Assembly: GCF_963676685.1 (NCBI RefSeq)
Contig: NC_092354.1
Span: 68,014,001-68,078,000, forward strand
DNA length: 64,000 nucleotides
Origin: Mytilus edulis
Lineage: Eukaryota
Reading direction: 5' to 3'
Shown: positions 24,212 through 37,089 of the stretch, piece by piece
Layout: each line of letters begins with the position of its first letter
Numbering within the stretch: the first letter of the stretch is position 1
Translations under genes and position numbers: made by a program
Notes under the pieces: generated by a model
Database searches by the model: none
The model's input: the letters and a program-made list of their open reading frames with translations, nothing else
Told to the model about the DNA's origin: nothing

Positions 24212-25118
24212 GGCTACTTTGTACTGATACATTTATTTCCTTATTGTACTATAAAACATCATTCTGTGTGAAACTGAAGTTGTTGCTTCCGTCATTTGGT
24301 ATGCAGTTTACATACACGTGTTTTTGATAAAAAAAAAACATTAGGAATCGAAAAACATATTTCACTTAAAATACACATCCTTGATTATTTCTGAAAACTG
24401 GATATGTAATTCATATTTAGGAAAAACAATTTTGTTGGCCTTACAGAATGTTTGTATTCAAAATAGGGATGGCAACGAGAACTCGTTTGCCTGTTATAAA
24501 TCTTGAGATATTTCTTCTCACATTACCGCTCACTTAAGTGCAGTTGAACTATCCCTTTCGTAATACTATTTAAAATTCCTTAACAATGTTGATAATGTAA
24601 CGTTAATCCTGCTTATATTATATTAAAATAATATTTTGAGGTAAGTGTTTTTTTTTCTATTCTATAACATTATTCGTTCATTCACTTATTTCAGCAAGTC
24701 AACATAGCGGCTCCTTGGTTACAAAATGTCAACAGTGAATTTGACGGTAGCTTACGAGAAAAAAAAATGTAAATCAAAAATGGAATATGTTTGGTTTGAG
24801 AATTAAATAAATCAATATCGCTTCCATGATTTTTTTTTCAAAACAATTAATGATGTGACATTAACATCATTTCCTAATTAATAAAATTTTTATTCAGATG
24901 TGACACGAAACATTACATTAGATTTCTGTTTACATGATGTGTGATCAGTCAGTTCCAAAACGGCTATCCGTCTATTTATATCAGACGGATATTCCGTCTT
25001 ATCAATACGGATCTCAGTTTTTCTTCCGTTCGGTATATATATATATTGAGCGTACCTATTATTAGAAATATATTGGAAACCCCCTTGTCTAAAGTAGTCT
25101 CCGTTCGAGTTTTACGAG

Positions 25119-25130
25119 ATCTCGCGAGAT
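25119..25130. promoter_or_regulatory. TCTCGCGAGA palindrome (BANP/'CGCG-element'-type promoter motif) just upstream of the transposase exon 1
   Basis: Perfect 12-bp palindrome ATCTCGCGAGAT in a locally CpG-rich patch, 32 bp before the ATG at 25163. Confidence 0.55.
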
Positions 25131-25162
25131 TTCCGGCTATTTTAATCCAGAATTGCACCAAA

Positions 25163-25187
25163 ATGGAGGACACAAGTGTCGATATCG
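25163..25187 (+). CDS. Putative shared first coding exon (MEDTSVDI) of the transposase and the accessory protein
   Basis: AAAATGG context and donor G|GTGGGT in phase 1, matching the phase-1 acceptors at 29079 and 32172. Confidence 0.55.
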
Positions 25188-25364
25188 GTGGGTAGAAAAG
25201 TCCAAATATTTTATGTTTGCGTGTTTCTATCAATTTGATAATTGCAAATCAGAAAGAAAACATTCCAAATTAATGAAAAAATCTAATACAAACGGCATTT
25301 AAATGTTTTAACACAGCGACCGAAGCCGACCGAATTGAACAAAAAACAGAGATAAAAACAACTG

Positions 25365-25516
25365 TACGGATTCCCCGTCTACAACATAAAATAAACAATA
25401 CGGATCTTCCGTCTACAACTAAAAACAAACTAGACAGGATTTCCGTCTACAAATAAAAGCAAACTATACGGACTTTCCGTCTACACACTAAAGCACACTA
25501 GATGGATTTACCGTCT
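25365..25516. repeat. Five-unit tandem array with a 34-bp period, built on the palindromic ACGGA-N3-TCCGTCT motif
   Basis: CCGTCT starts at 25375, 25409, 25443, 25477 and 25511, separated by A-rich linkers. Confidence 0.9.
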
Positions 25517-25790
25517 TCTCAAATTAAATCAATGTAGACGGATAATCGTTCTTAATTTTTTAATTATGTTTACGTTACTCAGAGTCAGCATGGACGTGCC
25601 TTTCCATTACATTTTGAAAAGGGGGAGGGCTGCATTAAAATAGTATGAGGTCCTAAAGGATGAAATGCATAGGCACCAGATGAAGGCAACAGTTTCAAAC
25701 TGAAAAACAGACAATGGGGACCTTTTGTTCCCCATAATTTTCTGTGAATCGGGGGGTTTTAAAGACAATAAAGTTTCACTAAAGTCAAAA

Positions 25791-26618
25791 GTTTGGAGCA
25801 AACCATAATCTGTTATGTCATATATTATACCTCAAAATAATTGTCTTTACTCATGAATACTACATGAATATGACATTGAAAAACCATAAATTCACAAACA
25901 TAACTTATTGTTGAGGAAAACAGCCCCCCTTTTTTGCAAAAAATCCAGAGCAGTTTTGAACTATTCGTTTTATTTATCAAAATATGATAAATGTGTTGTT
26001 TAAAAATCCATACAGGGCAAGCTGTCCTTTTTTAGACATTTTTAAAAATTGCTAATTAGATCACCAGAAAGAAAAACAATATGTTAACATGAAAGTGAAA
26101 GTAGGTTTATATGTCAGCCCCCTTTTTTTGCAAAAAGTCCAGAGCAGTTTTGAACTATTCGTTTTATTTATCAAAATATGATAAATGTGTTCTTTAAAAA
26201 TCCATACAGGGCAAGCTGTCCTTTTTCAGACATTTTTAAAATTGCTAATTAGATCACCAGAAAGAAAAACAAAATGTTAACATGAAAGTGAAAGTAGGTT
26301 TATATGTCCTTCAAATTGTACTTTCATTTTAGTATTCAACACATTTTTCGTTTGACTGACTTTAAATAGGTTTTATTTCTAAAAAGGACAGCTTGCCCTG
26401 CATTGATGTTTTACGAACACATTTTGCATACTTTCACAAGCAAAAATGATAATATAAATGCTCTGGATTTTTTTTTTTTATAGGGGAGTGCATTTTTCTG
26501 AATAATAAGTTATAGTTGTGAATTTATGCTTTTTCAATGTCATATTCATGTAGAGTGAGTAAAGACGATTATTTTGACGTATAATATATGATATAACAGA
26601 TTACAGTTTGCTCCAAAC
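25791..26618. mobile_element. Foldback MITE with arms of about 250 bp and an internal direct duplication of about 194 bp
   Basis: Termini GTTTGGAGCAAAC / GTTTGCTCCAAAC. The segment 25921-26114 is repeated at 26115-26308. Confidence 0.8.
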
Positions 26619-27402
26619 AGACATTATAAACAGGCCGGGATTTTGACCAAAGAAGAACCTTAAGTTGGTGGTAGGGTGGGGCTCCGGAAAATGCAAAGGG
26701 GGATTTTTTTTTTAATTTCATGGTTGATTGACTTTTTTGTTTGGATCTTGATATGTAGATGAAGATGCATTAATTGATATATAGTCGGAAACCTTCATTT
26801 TTTTTTATAGGGGGAAGGACCATTTTTTGATACTTTAGTTCAAGGCATACCGGTATATGGTGACAATGGCAGATTAAGCACCCGCCACGCCCCCCCCCCC
26901 CCCCCCCCCCCCCCCAATTTTTGTGAGTGAACAAAATTGTTTTGAAACAATAGAAAATCATTTTTAAAGTGTGACACTTGTCTGGGTTTTTTGAAATTTC
27001 TGTATCCGCCCCTGGGTGGATTGCTATTGGGTGGAACAAAACCCTGTTTTAATATAATACAATTGTACTATACTATAGTCTATAGTATATATATAAACAT
27101 AACATATTCCAAAATTCTTTTTTTTATTTGGTTCTTTGGCACATGTCAGGTCAGAATAAAGGGTTTTATGTTAGTTCCGGTAAAGGGAGCTCTGGAGGGG
27201 CAAAAAGGGGGAGCATAATTTTTTCAACTTTTTTATTTCTGGGCCGGTTTTCAAAATTCTTTTATTATTTTGATCCTTGACACATGTCAGGTCAGAATAA
27301 AGGATTTTATGTTGGTTCCGGTGGAGGGGGCTTGGAAGGGGCAAAAAGGAGAGATTAATTTTTTCACCTTTTTTTATATCTAGGCTGATTTTCAAAATTC
27401 TT

Positions 27403-28365
27403 TTTTTAGCTCACCTGGCCCAAAGGGCCAAGTGAGCTTTTCTCATCACTTGGCGTCCGTCGTCGTCCGTTAACTTTTACAAAAATCTTCTCCTCTGAAA
27501 CTAACAGGCCAAATTTAACCAAACTTGGCCACAATCATCATTAGGGTATCTAGTTTAAAAAATGTGTCCGATGACCCCACCTGCCAACCAACATGGCCGA
27601 CATGGCTAAAAATAGAACATAGGGGTAAAATGCAGTTTTTGGCTTTTATCTCTGAAACTAAAGCATTTAGAGCAAATCTGACATGGGGTTGAAAATGTTC
27701 ATTAGGTTAAGATCTATCTGCCCTGAAATTTTCAGATGAATCAGACAATCCGTTGTTGGATTGCTGCCCCTGAATTGGTAATTTTAAGGAAATTTTGCCG
27801 TTTTTGGTTATTATCTTGAATATTATTATAGATAGAGATAAACTGTAAACAGCAATAATGTTCAGCAAAGTAAGCTCTACAAATAAGTCAACTTGACCAA
27901 AATGGTCAGTTGACCCCTTAAGGAGTTATTGCCCTTTATATTCAATTTTTAACCATTTTTCGTAAATTTTTGTAATTTTTTACAAAAATCTTCTCCTCTG
28001 AAACTACTAAGACAAATTTAACCAAACTTGTCCACAATCATCATTAGGGTATCTAGTGTAAAAAATGTGTCTGATGANNNNNNNNNNNNNNNNNNNNNNN
28101 NNNNNNNNNNNNNNNNNNNNNNNNNNNNNNNNNNNNNNNNNNNNNNNNNNNNNNNNNNNNNNNNNNNNNNNNNNNNNACTGTAACTACCGGGCCAAGTTC
28201 ATTATGGATAGAGATAATAGTAAGGAGCAAGAATGTTCAGTAAAGTAAGAGCTACAAACACATCACCTTCACCAAAACACAATTTTGTCATGAATCCATC
28301 TGTGTCCTTTGTTAATATGCACATAGACCAAGGTGAGCGACACAGGCTCTTTAGAGCCTCTAGTT
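27403..28365 (+). mobile_element. Helentron/HINE-like bivalve repeat with internal tandem core; spans the assembly gap at 28078-28177
   Basis: 5' TTTTTAGCTCACCTGGCCCAAAGGGCCAAGTGAGC hairpin, a CGT microsatellite, and 3' AGGTGAGCGACACAGGCTCTTTAGAGCCTCTAGTT hairpin. A related fragment lies at about 19150-19560. Confidence 0.75.
28078..28177. other. Assembly gap (100 N)
   Basis: Run of N inside a tandemly repeated element. Confidence 1.
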
Positions 28366-29078
28366 TATTTCTGTGCAGATTTCCAAAATTTTGTTTTTAT
28401 TTTGTTCCTTGGCACCATGTCGGGTCAGAATAAAGGGGTTTATATTGGTTCTGGTGGAGGGGGCTCAGGAGGGGCATTTGTTCAATATATTTCTAGGCCG
28501 ATAATGTTCTGTTATTGCTAAAAGATATCTGATTAGTTGTATAAGATATCTCATAATGTTCCTGAGATACCTAATATATTTTATAAGATATCTCATAAAT
28601 TTTATAAGATACCTTATAAAACAAATATATTAAATGTAAATACAGCTTGCCATAAATCTTATATATTTTCTTCTTTTTTTTTTAAATATCTTAATAAAAT
28701 TGAGAAAGGAAATGGTGAATATGTCAAAGCGACAACCACCCGACCATAGAGCAAACAACAGCCGAAGGCAACCAATGGGTCTTCAATGTAGCGAGAATTC
28801 CCGCACCCGTAGGTGTCCTTCAGCTGGCCCCTAAAATATGCATAATAGTACAGTGATAATGGACGTCATACTAAACTCCGAATTATACACAAGAAACTAA
28901 AATTTAAAATCATACAAGACTAATAAATTTCAGAAAATGTGAGATATCTTTTATGAAGTATTATAAGATATCTTATACTTTAGTCAATAAGGTATTGGAT
29001 TATCTTTATAAGATGTCTTATAAACAATTTTGAATAAAATATCTGATAAAGTATAATTTTGAAATCAATTTTTTTCAG

Positions 29079-32000
29079 ACTTGTGTGTGCATTCACACCA
29101 AATTAAATTGAAAGAGTTGTGTAGATTATGTGGTCAAGGGGTCAAACAAGAGAGTAGTTGTGAAAAAACATGCTTTGCTACCGAATTGCTGCAACGCCAC
29201 AACATTGATATCTATTTAGACAGCACAAGTATTCATCCAACTCAACTATGTAATGCATGTAGATGTTCCTTAAGACGATATCGAAACACACCTACTAAAA
29301 AAAGGAAGATTTCACAACAGCATGATACACCAGTGACATTTGTGGAACACTCACATAACTGTGATTTATGCTATCCAGACTGCAATGTGGATTCATTTTC
29401 AGACCAAACCCCTTTATCGAAGGTAGATAAAATTTTCACAGAATTTAAAACACTTTCTTTTGACGAAAAGAAAGACTTGTTGCAAAAACAAATTGACAAT
29501 GTCAAAGAAGAAATTGATTTGAAATCAAAAATAGAAGAATTTAAAGGACTGCATCCATACAATGATAAAACCTCACTTTCAAAATTTGATCTAAAGGAAT
29601 ACTTTGATTGCTTTGACGATTTTATTGTAGAACTACTATTTTGGTTGTTTGGAAAATCAAAAGTTATGAACAGTTTACCAGAATCAATCACAGTCATGGA
29701 ATGTATGTATCGTCTGTTTGATAGTTCATTTATAGGCCAGTGGTCATTTTTACAAAACATTGTTATTTTCTCAGCTTCAAAAAACAAAAATGTCTGCAAT
29801 ATCTTTGGAACTTCTGTACCAGCAGCCAAATTTTCCACACTGTCAAATTTTTTATCAGATATTGAAAGCACAGAAGAAACTCCTTGCCCAGAAGGAGATG
29901 TCATATTTATGTTTGACAATGAGCAAGTAATTGGACGAAATTGGAACATCAGGGTAAAAAATCGAATCAAATCCTCAATTATTACAAATGTTGCAGTAGC
30001 TGCTGTTCATAGCCATGATGATACGGAGAGTATTCAAACAGTAGAAGAACTGATGCCCGGGAAATGGTTAAAATCAGCAGGCAACGAAGATACAATATTA
30101 AAGTTATGTGATGAAACTCTCAAGGAAGAAGTTGGTGATCAAGACAATGATACACCTTTTTTTGAAAAATTGAAAAGCGTTCATTATGAAGAGCTTTATC
30201 GACAGATAGACTTTGTCATTAATCTAACTGAAGAACAGTTGTATCTAGATGACAAAACAGGTAACTTTATGGACAACATTGACCAAATTGTTAAAGAGTT
30301 GGAAGAATTAAATGAGTCAGTAAGATGTCCTAAATGCAATTTATTGCTGGAAAAGAATAAGAGGAAATGTCCAGTGTGTCACATTCTTATGTCAGAATAT
30401 AGAAAAAATCAAGAAGTAGCTCAAAAAGAATCTGAAGAGGAAGAAAAGTCAAAGAAATGTACAGCAAAATTATACGAGAAAAGAAACAATAAGGGGCTTA
30501 ATGAAGACAAACAATCATTAGAGTCTGTTTATCGATATGAACATATTACTAGCAATCATATTTCTGAGGGTGTTGATGTAAGTGTACTTGACCCGGTTCT
30601 TGCTAATCCAAACTCTATCGAAAACATTCTCTATGTTTTGCGGCATATTGGTAAGAAAGCGGGCATAAAGCGATATGTTAGTTCTGGTAAGAGATATTGG
30701 ACAGTCATTTGCTGTGATGGGCTTCCTCACAGTTTAGTTAGAAGGCTTATTGAAGAATATCTACATTGTTCTGAATGTGATGTTGGTTGCCTTGGTATAA
30801 AAGAAATGGAAAAACATGCTAAGAAAGTGCATGGAGGTAAAGTTTCATTCTACTACGAGTTTGATTGGGTTTTATTGTTAACTGGTGATGGACACTACGA
30901 GATGAACCTAGTTAAAAGTTTTATGGAACTAAATTGGGAGGTTTTCATGAAAAACTTTGCCCAAAAGATGGGATGGATAAGTGAAGCTGCACAGAAATCG
31001 GCTAAGAAATGTTCTGACAATCACAAAGCATGGCAAATGATCCTGACATTTCACATTGGCACAATGTGTGAACTTGTTATACCATATGTAGCATATGAAA
31101 AGGGAAGAAATGAAAACCCATCGGCAGAAGGATATTTAACTTATGTGAAGAAACAAGGATATAATTCCAATTATATGTACCTTTTTGAAATGGTTTGCAA
31201 GTATACTCAGGGAATAGTAAATTTTCGAATGGCTACAAGGCGGAACAATTGGACCCTCCTACAATCTGCAAAATGGATGACTAAGGAACTGTTCCATGGT
31301 CGGAGTCATCCCAAGTACCAAGACATTGAGATATACGACCAATTTGTTCAGCATATTATGCCTGAAAAGGTTAAACAGTTTGTTAGGTTAAATGCTACTA
31401 TGTCAAAAACAGGACACCCTAGCAAAGGTCAGGGATACGACTTTATTTTAGAGGAAGAAAACAAATCTTTAAAGATATGGTTGAAGAGGGGAACTCCGAC
31501 AGACAAAATGTGGTTCAGCACATGTAGAAATCACCAGTACTTGAAGCAAATAAGGGATCATGTGTTCTCACAAATTAAATCTCAAAGTATCACAGATGGT
31601 AGAAATATAAATCTTGATGAAGAAATATTCGAATGGAGGTTACAGCTAAGGAAAACAGGTTTCCTTTACAAATATGTTGCCTTGACATCCATATCTGGAG
31701 ATATCCTGTGTCCAGATCTTTCAAAATTCACCTCAGATGCAAGCAGAAAACGGTCATACCGAATTTTAGACATGCTTCTTCAACAGGAACCGCCATCTGA
31801 TCCAACACTAAATTTCCCTGTATATGTTACTTATGCAGAGCAGGCAGAATACCTATCATTTCATAACTTGTGCATTAGAGACATTGATGTAAAGATCAAG
31901 GAAGGTTTGGAACGTATCCAAGATGAGGAAGCTAAAAAAACAATGGAGGAGTTTTTTCAAACAACAATAAAAAAGAAGAGGTGTTTGAAGGAGGACCATT

Positions 32001-32116
32001 TACATGTGCTACAAACAGTGAATGAAATAATAGAAAATCAAACCGAAATGACTATCCAACAACCTGACTATAATGATAATGATAATGACGATCTAGATGA
32101 GGGATTTTCTGTTTAA
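29079..32116 (+). CDS. Large transposase-like protein: RAG1-N-terminal/Chapa-type Zn module, Academ/DUF6589-like DDE core, and inserted zinc ribbon and C2H2 finger
   Basis: Intact 1011-codon ORF preceded by a TTTTTTTCAG acceptor. N-terminus HQIKLKELCRLCG...IDIYLDSTSIHPTQLCNACR...EHSHNCDLC. Core motifs FMFDNEQ, ICCDGLP, TGDGHYEMN, LFHGRSHPKYQ and GYDFILEEENKSLK. Zinc modules CPKC-x10-CPVC and CSEC-x12-H-x4-H. Confidence 0.75.
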
Positions 32117-32171
32117 TTAAGTGGTAAGTGAAAATTAACTATTTATAAGTCTTTTTTTTTAATTATTTCAG

Positions 32172-32303
32172 ATTTCGGAAAAGAAAATACTCCTCAATCA
32201 ATGCCAGTACCAGAAGATCATTTGTATCCCCTCATTTTCGATCATCTTGACATTACAGACATTACAGACATTACAGATATCACAGATATTGCTGGAGTCC
32301 ATG
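32172..32303 (+). CDS. Accessory-protein exon a (phase 1-1, DIT repeats)
   Basis: TTTCAG|AT TTC GGA...GTC CAT G|GTGATT, 132 nt, open frame. The donor is weak. Confidence 0.55.
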
Positions 32304-32649
32304 GTGATTTATTACACCCCCGCTTATTTAATCAGTTCATAAAATTATAATATAAAGATATTTGTTTGAGTAATCAATGGTAATAGTTACTAGAAAAAAT
32401 ACATTGACGTTTTTCTGAACAATTTTATTATCAATAGAAATTTATTGAAAAATGCACAGATCTGGGAAAACGCAACAAATGCAGCGATATGCTCAAGAGA
32501 ACAAACTAAGTTGAAAATGGCAATCATAAAAATATAAAGCAGAGACAAATTGGTCACAATGCACATTCACCACATGCATCTTAAATTTTCCTTGAAAAAT
32601 CATAAGGTTTTTATTGCTTTTAAGCGGGATATTAAAGTATCACTATTTC

Positions 32650-32731
32650 CATCTTCGCTAGCCAAGGGTTCCAATTCCACCTACTCCTCTTGTAGGAGTG
32701 GACAGATTAGAACCCTTGGCTAGTGAAGATG
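32650..32731. mobile_element. Palindromic mini-MITE of about 80 bp
   Basis: CATCTTCGCTAGCCAAGGGTTC ... GAACCCTTGGCTAGTGAAGATG. Confidence 0.8.
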
Positions 32732-32908
32732 CACAAGTGCAGGATATTCTGATCTCATTTCATTGCTAACTATATTTTTGTTTGGGGATTTGAGGTTGCA
32801 GATTCGGAGGAAAAATGTTTTGACCCAATCATCACAAGAAATTTGAAATATTTTGCAATCAACTTGGAAGTTATAAATCAGTCCTATCTAATTATAATTC
32901 TATTTCAG

Positions 32909-32971
32909 TTTCATCAGAATTGGTACTTAGTTCCAGCAGTGCACATATAGAAGCTTCAACATCTTCAATAG
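32909..32971 (+). CDS. Accessory-protein exon b (phase 1-1, Ser-rich)
   Basis: TTTCAG|TT TCA...TCA ATA G|GTAATA, 63 nt, open frame. Confidence 0.6.
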
Positions 32972-33333
32972 GTAATATATTTAAAGTCAAAATTTTCTAA
33001 AACTGTGAGTCTGTCAAAAAAAGAATGATTAATATAGATTTTCTTGTTTGTATTCTTTTTGAGACAGAAATTATCTATGAGGGACAATCTTCCACAATAT
33101 TCATGCAATGATCCTTTTATTGTATGGGAATATATTGCACGCTATAAATTTAACATTGACGTCTATACAAAAAAACAACATATCAACAGTGATAGCCAAA
33201 TTATTTGATTACAAGAAAAAAATTACTTTTAGCATGTTACACTTTCATAACGAAAATGCTCAACTCTGATTTTAGTTCTGCATTTTTTAATTTTGAAAAA
33301 ATACTGTGAAAGTGTTATTATTTTATTTGACAG

Positions 33334-33432
33334 GTAGCATCATCACACCACCACCATCCTCATCACATTCATCATATGCTGATCATGATTATGATCCATC
33401 TCTAGAACTGTCCCCTGTACTTCCAAAATTGG
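33334..33432 (+). CDS. Accessory-protein exon c (phase 1-1)
   Basis: GACAG|GT AGC...AAA TTG G|GTAAGA, 99 nt. Encodes SIITPPPSSSHSSYADHDYDPSLELSPVLPKL. Confidence 0.65.
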
Positions 33433-33529
33433 GTAAGAAGAACTGTTTTAAGCATCATATCAATGTGCAATACAAGCAGACTTTGTGCTCAAGGAAAAAC
33501 ATACATTCGAACTCCTATAAAAACCAGGA

Positions 33530-34160
33530 GTGAACCCAGGTGCTTTGGAAGGGTAAGCAGTTCCTGCTCTGTCAACAGCACCCGTCGTGAGGTCTAACAA
33601 AGTCAATCCGATATGTGTCACAATCAGGATAGGAACAAGACATGTTTATGACAATGGAAGCATGTATAATGTCATTTGTGTCACTGTTACATTGTAACGG
33701 TCAATTAATTCGTGATGACGACCGTAAAACTTCCGCAATGAAGAAGCCAGCCATTCCCTGACAAAACCCTGACTGAGCAGTTTTTGTGATAACAGCAACC
33801 CTCTCTCTAGAAAGTCATGATAAGTAATACATGCTCTAGAGTGACGGATAAGCTGAGAAATGTAAACACCATATGCTGGTAAAGCTGGTATGTTGCCACT
33901 AAGGAAAGGGAAATTGACAATGGGAAAGTTGAAGTCATCACACTTATTGTATAACTTAGTTATGAGATATCCCTCGTGGTCAGTTTCGAGAAATAAATCC
34001 AAATATGAAGTTGACTTTGGTGTGTCTGTTGTGTCCTTAATTTCAAGTTCAATAGGATACTAGTAGACAGATGAGATGTTAAAAGTCTTGAAATCTGTTG
34101 TTATTCAAGGACAAACGTCATCTATGTAACGGAAAATGAAATTAAAGGATAGGGCTAGTT
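33530..34160 (-). mobile_element. Penelope-like element RT C-terminal fragment inserted in an intron of the accessory gene
   Basis: FRYIDD-containing region near 34120 and the ORF LITKLYNKCDDFNFPIVNFPFLSGNIPALPAYGVYISQLIRHSRAC...LRKFYGRHHELI. Confidence 0.85.
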
Positions 34161-34395
34161 TCTACTTATCTACAAGTTCACATAATTGATGCAATTAATT
34201 GTTAAGAAAAGATGATATAATATCATTAACCCATGTTAAGATCTGGATTTATTTATTTTTTTACAAATACAGGTTTTTGATATTTTTTACAACTAAAGGT
34301 TCAAGACAGCCTGAATCACTCATCTTTTTTGTAAAATGTTCTGAAATAAAGTTATTGGAATGAAATAATATGTTTGATTTTCACTATTTTTTCAG

Positions 34396-34482
34396 GATCT
34401 TCAACAATGATAGGTGATCCTATAGTAGAACCACTAGCAGAGATTCATGTAGATGAAAATGAAAAAGCTAGCATGTCAAAAG
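34396..34482 (+). CDS. Accessory-protein exon d (phase 1-1, acidic)
   Basis: TTTTCAG|GA TCT...TCA AAA G|GTAAGC, 87 nt, open frame. Confidence 0.65.
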
Positions 34483-35450
34483 GTAAGCACTAAATTAATT
34501 CCTAGTTTTTCGGATTCACTAGCTACCTAAATTTGAAGATTGTGAAAAAAAAACCATTATTTTGGCCTTTTACATTTTCTTTGAGGTTTTTCCCTTCATT
34601 TCACAACAATTTACACTTTGAAAAATAAAATTGATCACAGGTGGTCATGTTTAAAATACATGATATACCCACCAACTTAAGTTAGCTTGGTACTAAAATG
34701 AAATAATCCCTAAATATTAAACAGGTCCTGTCCAAATACATTTTAGCGACATAAGCAAAATCTAGCAAAAATTGTGATCCAGTACTTTCACAGTATGATG
34801 TTTATTATTCTAATACTATTTGTTTGTAACAATGGATGTGATTGGCTATCCTTTTACTAAAAATTCGCGATTGTCTTGCCGTAACTAAGCTGCAGCCTTT
34901 CACACAGCCACCATTTTGAAATGATAAAATCCAAATGCAATATTTCTGCCACTTTGGCAAAACAAATGAATTTCATACTTTGAATAATACCTTTTGTGAG
35001 ATTTCATGAACATTTGAAGCTACGTGTCGCTAGGTAAACTCAATTTGCGACAGCAAAGCTTAAAATACAATACAATTATCTTCCCAGTTTGCATAATTAT
35101 CTCCCATTTGCAAGAGTTGTCTTTCTAATTTTAATGCCAAATTAGAGTTTTGACCCCAATTTCACGGTCCACTGAACATAGAAAATGATAGTGCGAGTGG
35201 GGTATCCGTGTACTATGGACACATTCTTGTTTTACTTTCTTTTAATGGTCCAATAAAAATCTACAGTAGATACATATCAAAGGAATTTAAACATTTTTAT
35301 ACACAATTTTTCAGAAGTGTTATATAATATGATAAAGATGCATTTCACAGAAATAACCAAGATAGAGACATTTAAGGTAAATTATGACAAAGGGGGATAG
35401 CTAAAACATATTTGGACCGAACCTGTTAAATATGTCTTTCTATTTTTCAG

Positions 35451-36073
35451 ATACCAAAAGAGATGGAAGAACTGGGCGGTTTGCCGTTAAATCTGGGACG
35501 CCAGAACAGATGAAAAGAAGGAGACAGATGGCTGACAGAAAAAAATTTATTAGAAATGTGGACTCCCTAATGGAGAAGGTTACAAAGTTTGGGGAGGATC
35601 ATGATGAGTCAGAATATTTCTTAGTTGTGAAGCACAAAAATGAGGTGCATTATACTGGCTCTACAAATTTACTTGATAATTTTAAATCAAATAATGTTAT
35701 AATGCCATTTAATGATACAATGTTCCATGCTAATCAGGAATCTATAATTCAAAGGCTAAATAAAGCCAAAATACTGAAAACTGCAGTGCAGCCATCCCCA
35801 ACAAAAGGTCCTGATCAGATGGGATTTCTGCCTGGACAAAATGTCAGACAATCCCAGCTGATCAACCTACAGCTGCTGGATATTCAGTCACCTCCTGAGG
35901 AAGATCATGTCAGCGTAGAGTCAATGAAGAAGAGAATATTTACCAGAAAGAAAAGACAATTACAAAAACCCAAACCAGTAGAAGTGGAAGGAAGTAATAG
36001 AGGGAGAGGTAGGGGAAGAGGGAGAGGGAGAGGTAGAGGGCGAGGTAGAGGGCGAGGTAGAGAGGTTGACTAA
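35451..36073 (+). CDS. Accessory-protein last exon: basic helix plus beta-hairpin (MADS-like?), NLS and (GR)n tail
   Basis: TTTTTCAG acceptor, phase 1, 623 nt to TAA. Contains KRRRQMADRKKFIRNVDSLMEKV...SEYFLVVKHKNEVHYTGS, KKRIFTRKKR and RGRGRG repeats. Confidence 0.7.
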
Positions 36074-36094
36074 ATATCCAGCAGCTGTAGTATA

Positions 36095-36242
36095 TCAGTT
36101 ATCTATGCTTAAAGCCGTGGGTATTGATATTGTACCACCCTGAAGCACTTTTGTGCAGCCTGAGGCGTAGCCGAAGGTTGTACAGTTGTGCTGAAGGGTG
36201 GTACAATCTCAATTCCCATGGCTATATGGGTAATTAACAGAT
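36095..36242. repeat. Long imperfect hairpin with a GAGGCGTAGCCGAAG centre (non-autonomous palindromic element, possibly Crypton-type)
   Basis: AGCCGTGGGTATTGATATTGTACCACCCT...AGGGTGGTACAATCTCAATTCCCATGGCT. Confidence 0.7.
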
Positions 36243-37089
36243 TTATCCCCGGCTTGGCTTCAATACGGAAAGTACATGCATCATAAATGAAATGTAAGCG
36301 ACGCAATTCCAACGTCTTTTTCATTACGCGTTGAAATAAATATTCCGATATATCTTTATAAAGGGAAAAAGTTTTTACCGATGTTAAAATCTCATAAAGT
36401 TGATTTCAAAGACAAAGCAAGGTAACACATAAAAACTTAGAGAATCACATTGACTCTGATCAGAGCGAAACAGGGTGCGTGAACTGGTCTCCAGTGATGC
36501 ATGCATTACCGTCTATGCGAATCCATACTCACTCAAAATGTCAAACTTGGGAATGTGAAACAATCGAAAGTCCAATAGATTAGACGACTATTCAAGTATC
36601 TACAAAATAAAAACAATGTAAGTAATAGGGATCGATATATCAGTTAACCATGTCGTGGTGGTGACCGTATAACTTATGTCGTATCGATTCAGTCAATCCT
36701 ATTGAAAAAAAACTTGTGGAGCCTTTTTTTATTTTAACTCAAAACCATTTGACTGCCAAAAACGTATGTATTATATGAGCATACATCAGTGTATCACAAC
36801 AAAACGATAGCATGGAGGGGAATGCACTGCCGCAAAAAAGAAACGTTGATAACGAGATGTCTGACGCAGATGCAAAGTTTTGAGACGTTCATCGATCATC
36901 TGTGTCAATTTCGAGAAAAAAAGATATGTAGATTTTGATCATTATTATGGAATTTTAAACAATCAGTTTTTGTGTTTCAGTTTGTTTCTACTCATATAAG
37001 AACAGAGTCGACCAGAAAGAGTGCACATTTAGTACCCATGTGTGTACCAGTAATAGAACAAACTTTTTGATTATTAAAATGTCTAGCAT

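Follow-up and report, generated by a model that had tools for sequence, protein, structure and literature searches.

A large DNA transposon of Mytilus edulis whose transposase probably joins a RAG1-type zinc module to a DUF6589-related, non-RAG core

We analyzed a 64,000-nucleotide stretch of the Mytilus edulis genome (contig NC_092354.1, positions 68,014,001 to 68,078,000 of the forward strand), termed the window, in which a long open reading frame (ORF) lies within a copy of a large DNA transposon that carries terminal inverted repeats (TIRs). Positions given without a contig name are those of the window. The best explanation of our data, and one that we regard as probable, is that this ORF encodes the DDE cut-and-paste transposase of the element, composed of an N-terminal zinc finger of the RAG1 type and of a core that is related to DUF6589 and is not RAG-like. 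The frame (29081-32116, plus strand) comprises 1011 codons plus a stop and is uninterrupted. A first-pass annotation, made by a model from the sequence alone, had described an unbroken ORF of 3 kb and quoted a series of peptide motifs from it, and we found all of these strings in the order and at the positions that it gave. They are not chance strings, since they are conserved in alignments of 14 and 47 relatives, from which we read the conservation of the core (that of the zinc module was read from 29 members).

The first predicted catalytic Asp (D279) is found on β1, in the motif FDNEQ (amino acids [aa] 278 to 282; 29912-29926, plus strand, as for all motifs of the protein), which is invariant in 47 sequences and forms part of strand 74-85 in the core model. 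The second (D546) belongs to the equally invariant CDGLP (aa 545 to 549; 30713-30727) at the end of β4 (strand 342-346 of the model), and the predicted catalytic Glu (E791) to DFILEEENK (aa 787 to 795; 31439-31465), also invariant, where it sits beside D787 and N794 on a helix (587-599 of the model). A CxxC-x10-CxxC zinc ribbon with nearly invariant cysteines (aa 416 to 433; 30326-30379) stands between β2 and β3 and shows a weak match to RanBP2-type zinc fingers (Z 3.1). Seventeen residues past D546 comes a C-x2-C-x12-H-x4-H finger (aa 563 to 584; 30767-30832), modeled as a hairpin plus a helix. According to the alignments and the core model, GDGHYEMN (aa 602 to 609, with H605 and E607; 30884-30907) marks the start of an alpha-helical insertion domain, and FHGRSHPKY (aa 738 to 746, an H-x3-H and then a Tyr; 31292-31318), identified from Pfam and the alignments, is within the stretch that matches DUF6589. 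Across the 47 diverse sequences, no variation is seen at D279, D546, E664, R720, Y746, D787, E791, or N794 and hardly any at C563, C566, H579, H605, H648, H743, and the cysteines of the ribbon. The first-pass annotation had viewed the ribbon and the C2H2 finger as insertions into the core; both are indeed present and conserved, but the position of the finger is that of the C(2)C in the CMC/Transib clade.

The model of residues 200 to 900 (pLDDT 90.7, pTM 0.90) arranges these elements in the order D279 on the first long strand, D546 at a strand end, the zinc hairpin plus helix, an all-helical region, and the helix bearing D787, E791, and N794. This model, which is very confident, shows the core as an RNase H-fold DDE transposase split by a large alpha-helical insertion, with D279, D546, and E791 as its predicted triad. 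A Foldseek search of the PDB gave no significant match for the core model. With VIA, the core matched Hermes with Z-scores of 8.6 to 9.4 over 276 to 285 residues and the P element transposase with 8.5 to 8.8 over 345 residues; integrases scored 9 to 10 over ∼130 residues, ISCth4 7.5, RAG1 at most 7.0 over ∼360 residues, and BbRAGL 5.5, and Tn5, Mos1, and MuA were also among the matches. At the sequence level, the window protein matched neither the RAG1-core nor the RING Pfam families, even at an E value of 10, nor any CMC or CACTA-type family, and a profile of the family compared with the sequences of the PDB found no match to the RAG1 core up to an E value of 10, RAG1 being matched in its N-terminal part only. 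Altogether, these results support a core that is not RAG/Transib-like by sequence and whose fold is closer to those of hAT and P than to that of RAG1, in agreement with the first-pass annotation, which had recognized neither a RAG1/Transib core nor a RING.

The only Pfam family matched by the core is DUF6589 (PF20231), at residues 737 to 834 (E value of 1.3e-6; 27.9 bits, for a cut-off of 27). It is matched by 4/14 members of the family and annotated on 7/45 database relatives, and the nearest Pfam-annotated cluster by language-model features is a molluscan DUF6589 cluster (score 0.86, 181 shared features). We infer a distant kinship between the core and the DUF6589 transposases. In the genome that we searched (a 1.37-Gb assembly with 14 chromosome-sized contigs; the G+C content of the window is 30 to 36%), PF20231 has over 100 much stronger matches (E values down to 4e-28), none of them at the loci of this family, and a comparison of coordinates showed that at least 30 of the strong matches adjoin a Helicase_C match located 1 to 7 kb away on the opposite strand. 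A transposase accompanied by a helicase is the layout published for AcademH, and the convergent helicase genes thus indicate that DUF6589 marks AcademH-type elements in this genome. XPG_I had four matches genome-wide, none of which is near a DUF6589 match, and AcademX therefore receives no support.

Neither Helicase_C nor XPG_I was matched within the window or within the complete copy of our element on contig C3, which is described below. The target-site duplications (TSDs) given in the Academ literature are of 9 to 10 bp for AcademH and 3 to 4 bp for AcademX. With TSDs of 5 bp and no helicase or XPG gene, the element lacks the hallmarks of Academ, and we consider it at most a relative of this superfamily and not a member. 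The Academ/DUF6589 core proposed in the first-pass annotation thus survives in part, in that DUF6589 is the sole Pfam relative and is a marker of AcademH here, but the TSD and the helicase or XPG hallmarks fail. Academ is reported to have expanded in bivalves, and our literature search found no report of a Chapa or RAG1-type N-terminal zinc domain on Academ transposases. One of the pairs of DUF6589 and convergent Helicase_C (C3:12668077-12670770) is located ∼27 kb upstream of the complete C3 copy.

The copy of the transposon in the window spans positions 24946 to 36343 (plus strand), with an intact 5' end and a 3' end truncated at 36343. Position 24946 is the sharp onset of similarity to three other copies (97 to 99.6% DNA identity), the left flanks being unrelated. 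The 5' TIR (27 bp; 24946-24972, plus strand) begins with CAGTCAGTTCC, and its reverse complement (26/27 bases) ends the full-length copy on C3. The latter, which is the only copy with both ends (G000:C3:12697229-12714120; 16.9 kb), has ATTAC on either flank, a 5-bp duplication. In the three other copies, the element extends more than 3.8 kb beyond the equivalent of 36343, up to the 3' TIR; this part of ∼3.8 kb, with a small convergent gene and the 3' TIR itself, is missing from the window copy. The genome contains three left and seven right ends of the window subfamily. A second subfamily, with ∼35% protein identity to the first, is represented by a 20.4-kb copy on C2 that has perfect 23-bp TIRs starting with CAGTC and TTAGG on both flanks. 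These ends show that the termini of the family are 5'-CAGTC...GACTG-3', with 5-bp TSDs in two subfamilies and a complete length of 17 to 20 kb.

Termini, TSDs, and core bear together on the alternative that fares best, namely, that the element is an ordinary member of the Chapaev group (CMC), in which the Aplysia element N-RAG-TP/Chapaev_ACa is included, and that its DUF6589 match reflects remote DDE similarity. In favor of this alternative, a Chapa-type N terminus is a signature feature of Chapaev, N-RAG-TP also comes from a mollusc, the gene contains introns, and a second ORF is present in the element. Kojima gives D...D...C(2)C...H(3)H...E as the order of motifs in the CMC/Transib clade, together with CA...TG termini and 2- to 5-bp TSDs, and the window protein has a C(2)C (C563-x2-C566) 17 residues past the second Asp and an H-x3-H (739 to 743) before E791, in an element whose ends and TSDs also comply. 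Published descriptions of Chapaev, however, list TSDs of 3 to 4 bp, termini that are invariably CAC...GTG, and C(2)C, LH, and H(4)H motifs, as well as TWA TSDs and transposases of ∼500 aa for Chapaev3. Our protein shows an H-x4-H (579 to 584) immediately past the C(2)C and has GH (H605) where LH would be. The 5-bp TSDs in two subfamilies, the CAG...CTG termini, the proteins of 1000 to 1160 aa, and the elements of 17 to 20 kb all depart from the published hallmarks of Chapaev, and they stand with the failure of the family profile to retrieve any RAG1 core of the PDB at an E value of 10, the greater closeness of the core fold to hAT and P, and DUF6589 as sole Pfam relative. We therefore judge membership in the Chapaev group unlikely, and we retain the DUF6589-related, non-RAG core.

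We then analyzed the N-terminal part of the protein (aa 6 to 97; 29096-29371, plus strand), which profile, Pfam, model, and conservation of ligands designate as a putative two-zinc module of the type found in the RAG1 N-terminal zinc domain (NZD) and in Chapa. The strings HQIKLKELCRLCG (aa 6 to 18), SIHPTQLCNAC (aa 50 to 60), and VEHSHNCDLC (aa 88 to 97) contain the residues that we propose as zinc ligands, with a first site formed by C14, C17, C57, and C60 and a second by H6, H90, C94, and C97. In 29 diverse members, C14, C17, C57, and C94 are invariant, H90 and C97 are nearly so, and a His is found eight residues before the first CxxC. The window protein alone scored 20.9 bits against PF12560 (RAG1_imp_bd), below the cut-off of 23.3, and matched 21WB, the solved N-terminal zinc domain of mouse RAG1, with an E value of 0.0012. 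A profile built from 14 members matched 21WB (21wb_A) with an E value of 1.6e-7 and full-length RAG1 chains at residues 143 to 272 only, compared to an E value of 0.99 for the best ZAD chain (7po9). PF12560 was matched by 8/14 members (best E value of 7.6e-8) and zf-AD by 1/14, and all seven PF12560 matches of the genome correspond to loci of this transposase family. By language-model features, the nearest named clusters carry PF12560 (0.92 and 0.91), with zf-AD at 0.79. The AlphaFold2 model of the module (pLDDT 88.1) contains helices at residues 2-10, 29-40, and 58-69 and a short one at 100-104. According to a 2026 preprint that presents the structure of the NZD, the domain comprises two interleaved zinc sites, ZFa, which resembles ZAD, and ZFb, to which the N terminus contributes a single His and the C terminus a His plus two Cys, and invertebrate and Chapa versions of the NZD have helices H1, H3, and H4; compared with this description, the helices of our module fit H1, H3, and H4, without the vertebrate-specific H2. 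On sequence grounds, we consider the module, as the first-pass annotation had proposed from the pattern of its residues, to be homologous to the RAG1 NZD/Chapa domain and not merely a ZAD, and the profile, Pfam, and language-model comparisons all place RAG1 ahead of ZAD.

The possibility of a generic, single-zinc ZAD with a superficial likeness to RAG1 arises from the structure searches, which returned Drosophila ZAD domains only (Foldseek E value of 5.8e-3; VIA Z-score of 6.8, with an rmsd of 1.9 over 61 residues), and from the single zf-AD match among the 14 members. The ZAD structures align, however, to residues 12 to 77 only and leave H6 and H90/C94/C97 outside as a putative extra site, in the one-plus-three pattern of RAG1 and type I Chapa. 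Moreover, 21WB was present in the sequence set only and not among the structures compared, so that ZAD met no contest from the NZD there. Given also the E values and the language-model clusters reported above, we regard a mere ZAD as very improbable. The AlphaFold and Foldseek check suggested in the first-pass annotation yielded a confident model of the module and, in the set that was compared, matches of the module to ZAD alone; Foldseek gave no significant PDB match for either the module or the core.

The combination of the two parts is widespread. A database search retrieved 4354 cluster representatives at an E value of ≤0.001, 609 of which were at ≤1e-30, and named members came from Mytilus, Saccostrea, Owenia, and Amphiura, all labeled uncharacterized. 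The fusion of a Chapa-type module with this core is the standard architecture of a very large and old family present in molluscs, annelids, and echinoderms, and the shuffling of a RAG1 module onto another transposase that the first-pass annotation had inferred is not a local event. One family member (P0168) is filed in NCBI under a bacterial metagenome-assembled genome, "Candidatus Thiodiazotropha sp."; it is most likely bivalve host DNA that was binned with the symbiont.

In the M. edulis genome, we found three near-identical protein copies and at least 10 intact paralogs (33 to 42% identity, frames of 1041 to 1159 codons). The ORFs of the four close copies diverge by 0.3 to 0.8%, with dN/dS ratios of 0.66 to 0.78 on 8 to 21 substitutions, and the three copies other than that of the window contain stops or frame-breaking gaps. 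The youth of the window copy explains why its frame is still open. In another subfamily, one pair gave a dN/dS of 0.19 on 16 substitutions, which hints at purifying selection along active lineages. Of the two explanations offered in the first-pass annotation for the unbroken frame, youth or selection, youth is the one borne out. The subfamily with 1159-aa proteins (C13:23664000-23683999 and C11:6688000-6707999; L036-L039) forms elements of more than 17 kb in which a ∼760-bp unit is repeated in a long internal tandem array.

The whole transposase frame is contained in a single exon of 3044 nt (29079-32122, plus strand), with its acceptor AG at 29077-29078 and its donor GT at 32123-32124. Directly 5' of the frame stand a stretch of Ts and then CAG; the first codon is TTG, and the earliest in-frame ATG is codon 196 (M196). 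In contigs of runs X1 and X3, the match begins at exactly 29079, with 29 to 30 unmatched bases upstream, and it extends through GT..AG joints (32122>32908 and 32969>33332) into a 62-nt downstream exon (32908-32969, plus strand) and then into the start of the next one (33332-33400, plus strand), from which the contigs continue. Between 78 and 89% of the sampled words of the ORF were found in 14 small contig sets from ten studies, and an RNA-seq run gave sparse coverage on one strand only. As the contig matches jump GT..AG gaps, these contig sets are RNA and the transposase frame is one internal exon, placed after an acceptor that is used in vivo; it is not a self-contained gene. The start at 29079 given in the first-pass annotation is therefore the first base of the exon, the frame itself beginning at 29081 with TTG.

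The 30 bases that precede the acceptor in X1 are found at one site of the assembly, C9:80861477-80861506 (L048:4478-4507), where they end in ...ATGGC followed by gtaagt. They are present neither in the window nor in any fetched copy of the element, and the genome search revealed no copy of the ORF on contig C9. With an upstream exon from C9 and no ORF copy there, the X1 transcript is a chimera with the exon of another locus, and it therefore stems from a copy of the element that is absent from this assembly. This suggests a polymorphic insertion within a gene, where the transposase exon was trapped in the wrong frame, as a stop three codons before the junction closes the transposase frame and the sole ATG is in another frame. 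Searches of the window, of the fetched copies, and, with the 30-nt sequence, of the assembly did not find a native first exon for the window copy. Many relatives start with a Met two to four residues ahead of the conserved His. The transcription and GT..AG splicing seen in contig sets of several studies, together with the intact frame, would suit a domesticated host gene, but we find this explanation barely credible, given an ORF within a TIR-bounded element with copies elsewhere at different insertion sites, stops or frameshifts in 3/4 copies, a dN/dS of ∼0.7, and a sole readable upstream exon that is out of frame and from another chromosome.

Several points weigh against a transposase with a RAG1-type finger and a DUF6589-related, non-RAG core. 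The DUF6589 match is marginal and covers model positions 303 to 403 of 410 only, the last quarter. All structural Z-scores are middling, although the leading matches are all transposases whose RNase H fold is divided in a similar manner and extend over several hundred residues; in a multidomain model of 701 residues, a lead of ∼2 units for hAT/P over RAG1 does not settle the matter. The motif order, the CA...TG termini, the 5-bp TSD, and the spliced, multiexon gene are features reported for the CMC/Transib clade, and a deep affinity to this clade, Chapaev included, is possible. The likeness of the module to RAG1 in fold is drawn from its sequence and from a published description. Finally, the window subfamily has no in-frame ATG before the zinc module and the sole readable junction is closed by a stop, which makes full-length translation from the window copy uncertain.

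We propose that the protein acts as follows. D279, D546, and E791 would bind the metal ions that cut the ends of the element and join them to the target across a 5-bp stagger, and the N-terminal module would be an accessory part that binds DNA, chromatin, or protein and helps to recognize or pair the ends. ACGGAT/CCGTC repeats (repeat family D8) are clustered next to the 5' TIR, at 24968-25540, where they include a 34-bp tandem array (25352-25487), and these subterminal repeats are candidate binding sites for the transposase. Devoid of a 3' TIR, the window copy is presumably immobile by itself and could at most supply the enzyme in trans.

Besides the transposase exon, the element contains a second ORF (35432-36073, plus strand) for a basic protein of 213 aa with a Gly-Arg tail, (GR)n, which is conserved in the other copies and matched no Pfam family. 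The 3' part of the C3 copy holds the convergent small gene that the window copy lacks, with two exons on the minus strand (L022 6491-6748 and 5554-5874); it looks HIRAN-like by eye, yet an exon-by-exon scan gave no Pfam match, HIRAN included. The intron that precedes the transposase exon holds a short interspersed repeat (∼230 bp; 28694-28927) specific to the window copy, positions 28708-28921 being absent from the other three. At this repeat, the depth of RNA and of contigs reaches the thousands, with sharp loose ends at 28694 and 28927. Further upstream of the exon, at 27400-28078, the element carries a partly tandem-duplicated repeat of ∼680 bp, which is found in more than 40 copies of ∼90% identity on all chromosomes.

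Where the non-core N terminus of RAG1 came from is an unsettled question in the history of V(D)J recombination. According to Kapitonov and Koonin (2015), Chapaev, Chapaev3, and TransibSU/RAG1 are the only transposable elements that encode the Chapa domain, and the 2026 preprint considers Chapaev the sole lineage that consistently retains an NZD-like N terminus, the scattered other matches forming no coherent group. Two surveys of RAGL elements in protostomes do not mention the window family, and we did not find the combination of an NZD-type N terminus, a non-RAG, DUF6589-related core, 5-bp TSDs, and CAGTC ends described in the literature. If the core is not of the RAG/Transib type, the RAG1-type finger is carried by at least one transposase lineage beyond the RAG1-like and Chapaev ones, as we infer here. 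Our broader proposal, which we advance tentatively and with less assurance than the identity of the protein, is that of an unnamed and very large DDE lineage, in which a RAG1-type N terminus is standard, the ends are CAGTC, the TSDs are of 5 bp, and the core is related to Academ/DUF6589 and is not that of Transib or Chapaev. If this is true, the domain is a module that has passed between three or more transposase superfamilies, and the lineage is, in addition to Chapaev, a candidate source or sister of the RAG1 N terminus; the direction of any such transfer could bear on the assembly of RAG1. Provided that the core is truly not Chapaev, the family would constitute a coherent, very large group that gives domain phylogenies an independent lineage, makes the direction of transfer testable, and offers many natural sequences with which to ask what the domain does. 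The family is so large that it may have an entry in Repbase or Dfam under some name, and we set it apart from Chapaev and N-RAG-TP by their descriptions; if it is already filed in Repbase as Chapaev or N-RAG-TP, our finding amounts to a well-characterized young copy of a known element.

In comparison with known systems, the window module and the RAG1 NZD have the same order of ligands, with one N-terminal His, a CxxC, an HPxxxC..C/H, and an H..C..C. Unlike RAG1, the window protein has no RING or ZDD after the module and its core has no sequence match to RAG1/Transib, and unlike in RAG systems, we saw no RAG2-like partner gene in the element. Transib and RAG-like elements share with the window element the 5-bp TSD, the insertion domain of the DDE core, and a C(2)C soon after the second Asp, whereas the cores have no detectable sequence similarity, the structural Z-scores are below those for hAT and P, and the window termini do not carry the CAC-type heptamer. 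Chapaev, Chapaev3, and Aplysia N-RAG-TP resemble our element as invertebrate TIR elements with a Chapa-type N terminus and a DDE transposase, and Chapaev also has a C(2)C after the second Asp. The window element differs from Chapaev, as described in the literature, in its TSD (5 bp versus 3 to 4 bp) and its termini (CAG..CTG versus CAC..GTG); its protein is ∼2 times the size of Chapaev3 transposases, the elements reach 17 to 20 kb, and the Pfam affinity is to DUF6589. With Academ, represented by AcademH with its helicase and AcademX with its XPG gene, the protein shares the C-terminal H-x3-H...DxxxE..N stretch, just above the Pfam cut-off, whereas the TSDs differ (9 to 10 or 3 to 4 bp versus 5 bp) and the helicase or XPG gene is a feature of Academ only. 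Lastly, hAT (Hermes) and the P element have no sequence similarity to the window family, generate 8-bp TSDs, and are devoid of the zinc ribbon, the C2H2-like finger, and the NZD, but they are the best structural matches over the whole core, with which they share an RNase H fold split by an all-alpha insertion and a catalytic Glu, predicted in our protein, on the helix that follows it.

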